Positions 172 to 16,400 of a DNA stretch of 64,000 nt are shown piece by piece. Made by a program: the position numbers and the translations under genes. The DNA is from Macrostomum lignano. Its lineage: Eukaryota. The notes under the pieces were generated by a model, which ran no database searches, was not told the DNA's origin, and saw only the letters and a list, made by a program, of their open reading frames with translations. Location: contig NIVC01002088.1 of the NCBI GenBank assembly GCA_002269645.1, forward strand, positions 124,001 to 188,000. Direction: 5' to 3'. Position 1 is the first letter of the stretch; each line of letters begins with the position of its first letter.

Positions 172-1431
172 GTCAGCTGCATTTGCTTGGCAATCCCATC
201 GGCATGGAGGACGGCATTATTGAGGTGAACCAGCTGGACCCGCAAGCAACTCCGCTACCATCAAACGCGGATCCAAGTCAGTACCCGTCACCGTACATGT
301 TTCGGCTCAACACCCCAAAGAAGCCTCGGCAGCCTCCTGGCATGTTCTTCTACTCCGGTGAGTGGCAGAAGTGCTTCCTGTGTTGATAATTTCAGATATC
401 GAATATGCTCATGAAACAGTGATGAAATCTTGACTATTGCATGGCTGAATCTCACAAGAGAAGCTCACAACTGTTTCAGAATACCCAATAAACATCTATC
501 TGACTGTGAGTCACACCATCCTTGGATTCGTGATCCAAGGCTCATCAATGATGGACAGAACGAATTACTGGCGAGCCTATGTGAGGAGCTTCAAGATATT
601 CTACGGCGATGACCCGAGAACTCTGGTTCCAGTGAGGTCTTATCAGACGAGCAACAGCTACGTTGATGTAAGATGACTTTTTGATCGAAATCAGTTCGTA
701 TTTCTACGCTAAAGACTCAGGTTCTTAAAATGCAGTGCTTTGTTATCCATTGCAGCACCAGTTCAACCAGTACTACAACGACATGATGCAGCTTCGAATG
801 GATGTCTCAGTGCCATTCAAAGCAAAAATAATTCAGTTCCGTCCCGTCAGTTATTACAACAGACGAGTGGCGAAGCTGGAAATCCTTGGCTATCCGGATG
901 GTGAGACTCGCAATTATTTCTCCCATTTTACCTTGATAAGTCAAAGTACGTTGATCCAATGGTTCATAGTAGTAATTCATGCAATTTGTTGTTCTCATTT
1001 CCCGCAGATTGTGGTCTAATTTCTGGTGACCAGGCAACGCTGTCAAGCCCAACGTCAAACACAAGGAACTTCTATTCAAGGACTTTTACCATTTCTCGGG
1101 CTTCTCGTTGAACACAAGCGGTGACCCAGTGAAGTTCCTAATGCAGTACAGGCACATGCGCACCTGGCAGCTTGTGAACTTTACAGTTCTCGGGGAAGCA
1201 ACGGTTCGTCCTTGTCGCTGATCAGCTTACAAATATGCAAATTCGAATACAAAGTATTTACTCTAATAATAAGCTTACAACTCACTCTCCCACTGCAGAT
1301 ATTTGCATCATCCAACGGACGCCACCAAGCCCTGCCGCACCTGATCCGAACAAATGAGATTCGCATTGTCATTCTGAACGGTTCCGCATCGACGATGTCC
1401 GTTCTGTTCCGAGGCTGCATGATCAAAGAGG
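172..1431 (+). other. Two F5/8 type C (discoidin)-like domains of the polycystin ectodomain
   Basis: PIGMEDGIIEVNQL...RLN; ILGFVIQG...YVRSFKIFYGDD; FKAKIIQFRP...KLEILGY; IRTNEIRIV...VLFRGC. Confidence 0.75.
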
Positions 1432-13400: not shown

Positions 13401-16400
13401 TGATCGCATCACATATGTACAGCTCACAGTGCCTCGGGATGTACCTCAAGTAGTGACTCTGGCTTATGTGGTCGATGAGCCATTTGTGTGGACCAACGTG
13501 ACCTGCTGGAACCAGTTTTACAACTTCAATCGCACCTTCTATGTAATAAAACAGGAGAATATCACAGGTTTGAGGGTGTTTCTGAACAACACACTTTATC
13601 GCACTGTAGAAGATTCGATGGCAAACATCAGCCTGACAACTGGAACTCACGTGTCCTACATGATTCTTGTTGGAGACGGAAGGAACGTCACGGTGGCTGA
13701 CAATTCCAGACTGTCGGCTGATGCATCTGATGTTTACATCTGGAACTACCCTAATCATGGGGTGTACGATGTCGAGGTGACGGCTTTCAATTTTCACACA
13801 AGACAAACTGTGTACGTGAGAAATGTAACGGTGCAACACATTCTGCAGAGCTTATTGCTGACGGCTCCAGCAAGCGTTCAGGTTCCTGATGGACGATTTA
13901 CAGTCGACGTCACCCACTCACTGACCCCATTCCCAACCAACGTGTCGTGTGTCATTTCATTCGTCAGCTCTCGTTTGGAGCTCAGCTGGGTGAACTCTAC
14001 AAGCCAGACGCAACAGCTTATGTGCCAGCGCTCAATGATTGGCTCGCCAGTGAGCATCCAGGTCTTCTGCTCGAATCTCGTATCGACAGCTGTTGTTGTG
14101 TCTAACCTGTCGTGCGAAGAGCGCATTATCGGTCTAAGCTTGACCTCGAAACTTCTCGAGCATCGAATGACTGATGTTGAAATATCAGCCAAGCTGCTCA
14201 ATGGATCTAATGTGCGCTACAGCTTTGATTTCGGAGATACATCACCAATTGAAAACTACACAAACCCGATGCTGTTTGCTGTGGACAAAGACATGGCAGT
14301 GAAGCACAACTATACAAAGTTGGAAACTATACAGTACATGTGACTGTCTGGAACACGCTAAACTCTCTGAATGCTTCGATCGGTCCAATTATCATTCTTG
14401 ACCCAGTGACATGTCCTAAAATCGTGTACAACAGCAGTGTTTTGTACACTCCAGCAACAGTCGGCTTCTGGGTCACACACCCCTGCTACCCTGTGACAAA
14501 CATGCACTGCACAATTGACTTTACTGGCTTCGGTAGTCTCTATCGGTACATTGACTATCTAGATGGAAGCAGTAGCGAGTACAGTGAAGCCTCGTTTCCT
14601 CGATCAGCCATCGGCTTGCGCAACTTCACTGTGAACTGTTCGAATCTACTCGACTGGCGCCTCACAAGTACGCCAGTCGAAATCGTTCTAGACGCAGTGA
14701 TTATCGGTGCATTCTACAATAACGGCTCAGTTCTGAACTACAATGCCACTACATTCGTGCTGAACATCACTCGATTCGGTACCAATGGCTGCTTTGTAGT
14801 GAACTTTGGTGATCACTCACCAGGTCGTTGCTTTGGCATTCCGAATCTCTGTGAACCGTACGCACGCAGTCACTCGATGAACTTTACCGAGATCTCATAT
14901 CAAGATACCAACCTTGTCTTCACTCACTTATACCCTTGGTACGGAAGCTACTCAGCAAGCGTCTTCGCCTTCAACCACGTCAGCAACGACACAGCCGAAA
15001 ACATTGCAGTGGTTCTGGACTGGCTCTGCTTCGAGCCTGGGCTCAATTTTACATTCAATGCAACAATTCTTACACCCGCGATCCCGACAAGAGACTGGTG
15101 GTGCGACGTTCCGTGGCTTTCAGCGTAGAAGCGGTCGCAGATCTGAACTGCACAAAAACGCAAAACACGTGGCGCTTCTGGCAAATATTGGACCATCCGA
15201 GTGGCTCTGTTGCTCTGACAAATCTGCCAGACTCATTCACGGTGTCACTGGCTGAGCGAACGCTTTGGTATGGAGTCTACAACGTGTTGCTGAATCTCTC
15301 CATGGCTCAAGTGCAGCCACCTGTGTCCACTGCGCTGAACTTTTATCTTGAGGTTGTCAAGACCCCGCTCGAATGCACCGGTATTGATGGGCCGTCGGAG
15401 ATAGAGTACAATGAGAATTTTGTACTCATAGCCGATAACTTTGTTCGCGACTATGACGTTGAGCCCGGAAATCACACCGGAATGACATTTACCTGGGTGT
15501 GTCTGCAGTTAAATGAAAACTCATCTGAGCCGTTAAACTTAACGACTGTCGTGTCACTTCCTACGAAGCAGGGAATCGAAAACTATCGAGGTTGCTATGG
15601 AAACGGAGCAGGTATTATTCACAGAGGTAGCAAAGCAGAGGCCGGCCGTTTTAACGGAAATAGCTACGACTTTATGCCGAATCGCACGTACCTGTTCAGA
15701 ATGATTGTGTACAAGGACACAAGGTGGCAGTACTGCGAGAAAGCGCTGAAAGTGAGGCCACAAAAGGCGCCAAAAATAAAAATGGCGTAAGTTCTGTCTA
15801 AATACAACACCAGTCGAATTTAATATTCGAGACGGAATGAAACATTTCCTATAAATTTGCTCATTTCAGATGCATCCACAACTGTGATTCGAAGATCACC
15901 TCTCTGCGAGATTTGGAGTATCAAGTAGAATGCACGAACTCTCTTTGCGGCCACAAGTTCCAGCCGCTTCAGTTCCGTTGGAGAATGTATCGAGTGGGCT
16001 CTCCTGCAGATGATAATTTAGCTGAGTGCACAAGAGGAGGTACGAGCATCAGATAGATAGATAGATACGGCTGTACTTTGTCATTTATGTTATTTACCAA
16101 GCTCGTTGTCCCCAACCTTCCCACTTCAGGTGTATTCACAAACAGCACTCTTGTTAGAACAAGTTCACTCTGATAAATGGCAGCTTTTACTACATAAATG
16201 TAACGGCGTACAACGTCGGACAAGAAGGTCCAGTAAGCGATCAGTTGCAGTTCATTGTGAACAGTCCGCCGTTGGGCGGAAACTGCAGCGTCAAACCACT
16301 GAAGGGAATCGCCATGGAGACAAAGTTTCAAATCAACTGTTCCGGCTGGAAAGAGTTCCACACAAACACCGGTAGCTTAAAATACGAGTACCGCATTCAG

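Follow-up and report, generated by a model that had tools for sequence, protein, structure and literature searches.

The polycystin-1 family, whose members can have huge ectodomains, is central to ciliary sensing and to kidney disease. The ectodomains of human PKD1, PKD1L1-3 and PKDREJ and of ten sea-urchin REJ proteins are built only from CTLD, SUEL, EGF, WSC, LRR and PKD modules, and the sea-urchin proteins act on sperm (PMC1934368). In planarians, PKD1L and PKD2L genes are markers of ciliated sensory neurons and are required for the sensing of flow and vibration, and the same study of 2024 stated that a complex N-terminal ectodomain is restricted to chordate PKD1 (PMC11448475). Here we analysed 64,000 nucleotides (nt) of the genome of the flatworm Macrostomum lignano (assembly GCA_002269645.1, contig NIVC01002088.1, positions 124,001 to 188,000 of the forward strand), hereafter referred to as the window. 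Its plus strand likely carries one gene for a giant PKD1L/REJ-type protein with 11 transmembrane (TM) segments, in which the observed frame breaks are probably assembly errors and for which a role as a tethered sensor is inferred.

The predicted protein resembles vertebrate PKD1 and the polycystin-1-like protein of amphioxus (XP_035692642.1) in its large ectodomain, its PKD, REJ and PLAT domains, its 11 TM segments and its polycystin and channel domains. It differs from vertebrate PC1, which combines LRR, WSC, CTLD and LDLa modules with approximately 16 PKD repeats, and from the amphioxus protein, which has WSC and at least 10 PKD repeats. The sea-urchin proteins SpREJ1-10 and human PKD1L2, PKD1L3 and PKDREJ share the REJ and PLAT domains and the channel-like C-terminal half with 11 TM segments, and some of them also possess lectin modules (CTLD, SUEL) in the ectodomain (PMC1934368). 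However, they are far shorter, contain at most one or two CTLDs plus SUEL, EGF or WSC, and have not been reported to carry F5/8C, FReD, F-type lectin, LamG or kringle modules. The flatworm PKD1-like proteins pkd1L-1, -2 and -3 of Schmidtea mediterranea likewise contain REJ, PLAT, polycystin and channel domains but were reported without complex N-terminal ectodomains; they provide the best functional analogy, as they act in neurons that are ciliated and sense mechanical or chemical stimuli (PMC11448475). No paper on discoidin, FReD or kringle modules in a polycystin or REJ protein was found in a literature search. The first-pass annotation, which described the combination as unusual for a polycystin, was right in so far as none of the characterised polycystins has it (human PKD1 family, sea-urchin REJ; PMC1934368).

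An exon-chain dynamic programme, with a three-periodic Markov coding model and splice-site matrices that were both trained on the window, joined the plus strand from 172 to 23030 into a single chain of 38 exons and 37 GT-AG introns. The same end points had been proposed in the first-pass annotation. An acceptor at 170-171 opens the first exon within the window, its donor follows at 358, and the stop codon is located at 23028-23030; the model is open at its 5' end. Once seven 1-nt deletions are restored, the product comprises at least 5,339 amino acid residues (aa). All but five of the 37 introns are 67-166 nt long; their GC content ranges from 0.26 to 0.45, and that of the exonic stretches is mostly 0.43-0.48. 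The first-pass annotation had placed roughly 2,100 aa of modules before a core starting at 11636. The spliced model concurs, with approximately 2,167 aa ahead of a giant exon that begins at this coordinate and measures about 4.15 kb (4,153 nt after frame repair). The domains run continuously across the long introns 4110-4928, 5880-6892 and 9498-10220, and a search of these three for extra exons found none. The first of them (819 nt) has an unusually high GC content of 0.45 and no coding signal, and may be a repeat or transposon fragment. Most of another intron, of 798 nt between the exons 17147-17240 and 18039-19377, consists of a (CTTA)n microsatellite (17318-18035, approximately 178 copies).

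Two annotated protein fragments of M. lignano concur with this model. P0087 (UniRef, 1,833 aa, "C-type lectin domain-containing protein"), retrieved by a word-indexed search that used the N-terminal 2,170 aa as query, aligns with aa 1-1321 of the model at 97.3% identity and with no gaps, which confirms 15 exons and 14 splice junctions; no nucleotide record was found for it. It is a fragment open at both ends. Its aa 1-512 lie upstream of the window and contain a true kringle (aa 426-502, 58.8 bits) just before the first discoidin, and approximately 420 of these 512 residues had no Pfam match. Counting these 512 upstream residues, the full protein is longer than 5,850 aa. The second fragment, P0035 (UniRef A0A1I8J9M4, 92 aa), is 100% identical to the model over 65 aa across the splice junction 11553/11636, that is, between the ectodomain mosaic and the giant exon; past these 65 aa it continues in a different frame of that DNA. 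In the public M. lignano annotation the gene thus exists only as disconnected fragments.

Among the traits of the polycystin-1-like family, REJ, PLAT, 11 TM segments with a TRPP-type module and PKD repeats were found and the canonical GPS motif was not; those found lie in one reading-frame chain with the mosaic, and the polycystin-1-like identity given in the first-pass annotation was confirmed by the REJ, PLAT, polycystin and channel domains and the 11 segments. The core consists of approximately 840 aa of beta-rich repeats without Pfam match, followed by PKD, REJ, a juxtamembrane region, TM1, PLAT, TM2-TM5, TM6, the polycystin domain and a channel formed by TM7-TM11 (Table 1). After frame repair, the PKD repeats before REJ matched Pfam PKD with 63.3 bits in two stretches and PKD_4 with 29.8 bits, and the REJ matches cover profile positions 42-448 of 452. 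PLAT is located directly after the first hydrophobic segment, as expected for the first cytoplasmic loop. The C-terminal matches were Polycystin_dom (98.4 bits), PKD_channel (103.9 bits) and Ion_trans (43.2 bits). Hydropathy analysis predicted 11 hydrophobic segments, with TM1 at 19288-19342 and the polycystin (TOP) domain between TM6 and TM7. LRR, WSC and LDLa had no Pfam match anywhere in the 5,339 aa, and the upstream 512 aa of P0087 added only the kringle; the combination of LRR, WSC, CTLD, LDLa and approximately 16 PKD repeats that characterises PKD1 orthologues was thus not seen in these stretches.

For the ectodomain, the spliced protein was cut by module and compared with Pfam, with PDB sequences (phmmer) and with a profile of Pfam-verified annelid discoidins (hhalign). 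The spliced model was used since Pfam searches of the unspliced open segments gave only weak partial matches, because the introns split the domains. Recognisable members of the mosaic are three F5/8C domains, CTLD-1, an F-type-lectin-like domain and a fibrinogen-C domain (FReD); the fourth F5/8C, CTLD-2, LamG, the kringle-like module and EB matched more weakly. The module list of the first-pass annotation was thus right in outline. Its second and fifth F5/8C domains (here X1 and X2) matched nothing in Pfam or hhalign, nor X1 in PDB. When X1 and X2 were compared as CUB-like, as discoidin-like, with each other and with the modules before the CTLDs of the annelid relatives, nothing significant emerged. 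No Pfam match to PAN/apple was obtained for any of three candidate modules, and the two modules that had been called PAN-like had none in a PDB sequence search either. A single-sequence AlphaFold2 model of the exon 4931-5485 reached a pLDDT of 29.8, too low for use. The F-type-lectin-like domain matched a Dimorphilus domain of the same Pfam family (BLAST), and its fucose-site His seems, as read by eye, to be substituted. The six-cysteine spacing and the motifs of the kringle-like module fit a kringle. Roughly half of the ectodomain modules match recognisable binders of glycans, lipids or matrix.

Table 1 Predicted features of the polycystin-1-like gene in the window and the evidence for each
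Feature	Position	Strand	Evidence and remarks
Whole gene model	172..23030	+	38 exons, 5' open; dynamic programme; agreement with P0087 and P0035
F5/8C-1	172..900 (exons 172-357, 480-667, 756-900)	+	Good support; Pfam 17.6 bits; PDB lactadherin C2 E 8e-4; hhalign probability 93.4% against annelid discoidins
X1, approximately 110 aa	1008..1431	+	Without assignment; no match in Pfam or PDB; P 0.14 in hhalign against discoidins; holds deletion near 1072
CTLD-1	1569..2107	+	Lectin_C 30.5 bits (cut-off 22.6); matches collectin and antifreeze CTLDs in PDB
F-type-lectin-like (FTP / NedA-like galactose-binding)	2108..2743	+	PF22633 28.9 bits (cut-off 27.8); weak PDB fucolectin matches 1k12 (eel) and 2j22, E 0.4-0.7
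Cysteine module 1 (earlier "PAN-like" 1)	2821..3291	+	No Pfam or PDB match; holds deletion near 2990
LamG / concanavalin-A-like, probable	3368..4109	+	Laminin_G_3 20.1 bits, below cut-off 27.6; E 7.5e-4; profile positions 4-96 of 151
Cysteine module 2 (earlier "PAN-like" 2)	4929..5242	+	No Pfam match
Kringle-like	5243..5486	+	Weak; C-x23-C-x26-C-x10-C-x9-C-x4-C; motifs CPKW and ENYCRMP; no Pfam match even at E<=10; hhalign against 11 Pfam-confirmed kringles P 6.3e-4, probability 28%, 46 columns
F5/8C-2	5653..7039	+	Good support; spans 1,013-nt intron; Pfam 21.4 bits; PDB factor Va C2 and lactadherin E 0.006; hhalign probability 96.5%
F5/8C-3	7040..7520	+	Moderate support; Pfam 24.8-27 bits, E 5e-6 to 2.5e-5; hhalign P 0.006
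X2, approximately 118 aa	7589..8026	+	Without assignment; no meaningful Pfam match; hhalign P 0.087
CTLD-2	8128..8886	+	Weak; Lectin_C 18.3 bits, E 0.004, below cut-off; acceptor 8648 or 8684 (12-aa difference); collinear with a Dimorphilus CTLD
PAN-position module (earlier "unknown")	8976..9257	+	No Pfam match; occupies place of Dimorphilus PAN_1, cysteines partly conserved (BLAST, MAFFT)
F5/8C-like 4	9349..10622	+	Weak; three exons; hhalign P 0.0023; collinear with Pfam-verified F5/8C of DgyrCDS14777; discoidin motif pattern legible
Fibrinogen-C (FReD)	10706..11314	+	One exon; Pfam 84.8 bits (cut-off 22); PDB fibrinogen, angiopoietin and ficolin E 2e-11 to 1e-5; profile positions 19-188 of 221
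EB / EGF-like	11410..11553	+	Weak; six cysteines; Pfam EB 17 bits, E 0.006
Giant exon: beta-rich repeats (approximately 840 aa), PKD (~14167-15035), REJ start	11636..15786	+	Holds deletions ~14318 and ~15090
REJ	15036..16669	+	Pfam 83.7 and 107.6 bits; holds deletion ~16162
Juxtamembrane GAIN-like region, degenerate GPS, then TM1	18039..19377	+	Holds deletion ~18295
PLAT/LH2	19540..19954	+	Two exons; Pfam 54.3 bits
TM2-TM5 and long cytoplasmic loop	20043..21113	+	Hydropathy, frame analysis; holds deletion ~20334
TM6, polycystin (TOP) domain, TM7-TM11 PKD channel, C-terminal tail	21268..23030	+	Pfam, hydropathy

Relatives of the core were obtained by an exhaustive HMMER search with the open reading frame (ORF) of the giant exon, which retrieved 78 sequences; word-indexed searches that used the core or the C-terminal half as query had found almost nothing. 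The closest known architecture occurs in two proteins of the annelid Dimorphilus gyrociliatus, DgyrCDS14438 (CAD5126282.1, 6,071 aa) and DgyrCDS14777 (CAD5126713.1, 5,543 aa), which are known as gene predictions alone. Their PKD/REJ/PLAT/channel core is collinear with that of the window protein at 23-35% identity and is preceded by approximately 2,700 aa with many F5/8C and several Lectin_C domains, together with PAN_1, Fibrinogen_C, F-type-lectin-like and EB-like modules. The collinearity covers everything between the CTLD/FReD region and the channel, both included; one high-scoring segment pair (q1738-2638) crosses the junction between ectodomain and core. As in the window, the membrane-proximal order is CTLD, PAN-position module, F5/8C, FReD and EB, and the GPS is degenerate (SNLFGS). 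Unlike the window protein, the annelid pair has more copies of F5/8C and a further F-type-lectin-like domain inserted between FReD and EB, and neither a kringle nor LamG was detected in it at E<=1e-3.

M. lignano itself contains paralogues. P0082 (A0A1I8JK18), P0005 (A0A1I8JIH8) and P0009 (PAA69298.1) share the core at 28-32% identity and the degenerate GPS motif, and in P0082 and P0005 a FReD-like and an EB-like module directly precede the beta-rich/PKD/REJ region. P0082 unites the FReD-like region (25% identity, E 5e-20), the EB-like module and the core in one gene model. In contrast to the window protein, the three paralogues have only 2.4-3.2 kaa as annotated and lack the mosaic of discoidin, CTLD and kringle modules, and the paralogue FReD is, unlike that of the window, too divergent for Pfam at E<=1e-3. 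Among the other relatives, P0001 and P0004 are adjacent ORFs on one 4,909-nt contig labelled as a metagenome-assembled genome (MAG) of a Kangiellaceae bacterium; they are 52% and 65% identical to the giant exon and together have about its length. Almost certainly, they represent eukaryotic (flatworm-like) DNA misbinned into the bacterial MAG.

The first-pass annotation had considered the architecture lineage-specific. This view did not hold, as the annelid pair carries a similar mosaic before a collinear core and the M. lignano paralogues have FReD-like and EB-like modules; annotated invertebrate PKD1L proteins share the architecture in part, with kringle and LamG not seen in the annelid pair. 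By its domain composition, the mosaic is unusual among characterised polycystins yet not unique to Macrostomum, because the two Dimorphilus proteins share the membrane-proximal order, and it appears to mark an undescribed spiralian subfamily with a degenerate GPS.

A canonical GPS before TM1 gave no Pfam match. The aligned position reads PVFRSNLFGS in the window protein, compared with VCECTHLTSF in amphioxus and QCFCWHLSTF in Fasciola, where the canonical form CxCxHL(T/S)xF is present. The core F-x-(S/V)-N-L-F-G-S is common to the M. lignano and Dimorphilus relatives and is devoid of the Cys-x-Cys, the His and the Thr/Ser nucleophile. Canonical GPS autoproteolysis in this clade is, from this motif, unlikely. 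Since HL(T/S) is replaced by NLF, the ectodomain is probably not cleaved off and would stay covalently attached, whereas PC1 and the amphioxus protein keep a canonical cleavable GPS (HLT). An attached ectodomain would probably suit a tether rather than a shed ectodomain or a tethered-agonist mechanism.

In analogy to vertebrate PC1 and PKD1L proteins, the protein may assemble with PKD2-like TRPP subunits. It may be located in the cilia of sensory cells, as suggested by planarian pkd1L and pkd2L, or on sperm, as suggested by the REJ proteins. The lectin, discoidin, FReD and kringle modules would bind glycans or matrix, and such binding, or a mechanical pull on the long, still-attached ectodomain, would be passed on to the channel part. 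A ciliary or gamete sensor of glycans or matrix with a TRPP channel, as the first-pass annotation had also envisaged, is by analogy a reasonable proposal.

Three-frame reading located the seven 1-nt deletions near 1072, 2990, 14318, 15090, 16162, 18295 and 20334. P0087 identifies the missing bases of the first two as a T (near 1072) and a G (near 2990), and the other five are located to within a few bases. The notion that all deletions lie in A-runs before G was overruled for the first two by this 97% copy. The break at ~14318, for instance, falls inside a PKD motif, between KHNYTK and VGNYTVHVTVWN, and restoring the frame raises the Pfam PKD score from 24 to 63 bits. In a first model the seven breaks had been treated as introns, which was rejected, as the sites were weak, the GC content was 0.44-0.61, compared with 0.26-0.42 in the other introns, and each gave a -1 frame change. 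Most of the frameshifts listed in the first-pass annotation proved to be ordinary short introns, and these seven remained as genuine 1-nt deletions. All breaks are single-base deletions, with no insertion and no multi-base indel, and the 16 kb of coding sequence contain zero in-frame stops. The deletions are probably assembly errors rather than inactivation. P0035, which derives from another assembly, breaks the frame where the window is intact and therefore indicates that such errors vary between assemblies. The exclusive occurrence of deletions points to a consensus error that is systematic in the assembly and would also affect its other genes.

The same deletions could mean that the window copy is a decaying duplicate from which no full-length protein is made. 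M. lignano carries many duplicated genes, seven frame breaks lie within 16 kb of coding sequence, and P0087 reads through both breaks that it covers. Moreover, its two indels against 36 amino acid differences over 1,321 aa are not far from a neutral ratio. Points against a pseudogene, however, are the single-base nature of all deletions, the complete lack of nonsense codons, intact splice sites at 37 of 37 introns and normal domain scores after frame repair, and the frame break of P0035 at another place is typical of long-read consensus errors; we therefore regard decay as unlikely. Far less probable still is a pair of adjacent genes, in which a secreted or anchored lectin mosaic ends before 11636 and a shorter PKD1L protein starts with the giant exon. 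Trans-splicing in M. lignano allows closely packed genes, aa 1322-2145 are covered by no transcript or annotated fragment, and in the public annotation P0087, with the N-terminal mosaic, is entered separately from the later parts. Yet in P0035 the EB exon continues into the giant exon precisely at 11553/11636, the giant exon begins at an in-phase acceptor without initiator context, and the exons between 7270 and 11553 are all open and phase-compatible, with introns of 68-723 nt. Furthermore, the annelid pair and the M. lignano paralogue P0082 contain FReD or FReD-like, EB-like and core regions in the same order in one model, and P0087, open at both ends, is not a complete protein.

With the gene model unchanged, the protein could instead be a REJ-type gamete-surface receptor that acts in the interaction of sperm with the egg or the female tract of this hermaphrodite. 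In sea urchins, REJ proteins that carry lectin domains act on sperm, and these domains evolve under positive selection (PMC1934368); the ectodomain found here consists of duplicated lectin cassettes, as is often the case in reproductive proteins. The functional data on flatworms, however, all place PKD1L and PKD2L in ciliated sensory neurons (PMC11448475), and the conservation of the mosaic outline between flatworm and annelid argues against a very fast, species-specific turnover, so that a gamete role appears possible but doubtful. The favoured reading of a single gene for a tethered sensor has several points weighing against it. The stretch of aa 1322-2145 (window ~7270-11490) rests on splice signals, coding potential and annelid collinearity, and the true N-terminus with the signal peptide lies outside the window. 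X1, X2 and the two cysteine modules are not firmly assigned, and the kringle-like, LamG and CTLD-2 matches are below the Pfam cut-offs. The loss of GPS cleavage is read from the motif alone, and the PKD2-like partner, the site of expression and the ligand are all proposed by inference. To these points the possibility of a decaying duplicate adds the seven frameshifts, two of which the 97% copy lacks.

The remainder of the window (45% GC overall) contains satellite arrays and two further coding regions, and Rfam detected no RNA families in the window. A GC-rich (0.61) coding region of a Ty3/gypsy-type long terminal repeat (LTR) retrotransposon lies at 33926-37979 on the plus strand. Its ORF 33926-36952 encodes gag-like/PNMA, aspartyl protease, RVT_1 and RNase H domains, and an overlapping ORF in another frame (36801-37979) encodes the integrase. 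A CDP-diacylglycerol synthase-like gene (Pfam CTP_transf_1, 117 bits) is located on the minus strand at ~54668-57482; its exons include 57482-57387 and 54799-54668, and satellite arrays lie within its introns. Six tandem arrays were found at 45681-49692, 52271-53077, 54094-54517, 54942-55699, 56137-56958 and 63308-63820. The largest has a 40-nt unit in approximately 100 copies with 97% identity, and the units of the others are 54, 23, 27, 20 and 48 nt long.

The findings correct the published view that confines complex polycystin ectodomains to chordate PKD1. The M. lignano annotation breaks the gene up into fragments that look unrelated, most likely because single bases are missing from the assembly. 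Tentatively, we propose a conserved spiralian clade (at least in flatworms and annelids) of giant polycystin-1-like proteins of 5,300 to more than 6,000 aa, in which a mosaic of lectin, discoidin, FReD and kringle modules of more than 2,500 aa would be held permanently on a TRPP-type channel subunit by a dead GPS and would act as a gating tether, anchored to glycans or matrix, in ciliated sensory cells. If true, polycystin mechanosensation would here work through an extracellular tether, independently of the cleavage and the tethered agonist of vertebrate PC1. The apparently uncleavable GPS offers a good place to ask whether ligand binding or tethering gates the TRPP complex, and since RNA interference, in situ hybridisation and transgenesis are feasible in M. 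lignano, this flatworm may provide a tractable model of the coupling between ectodomain and channel.

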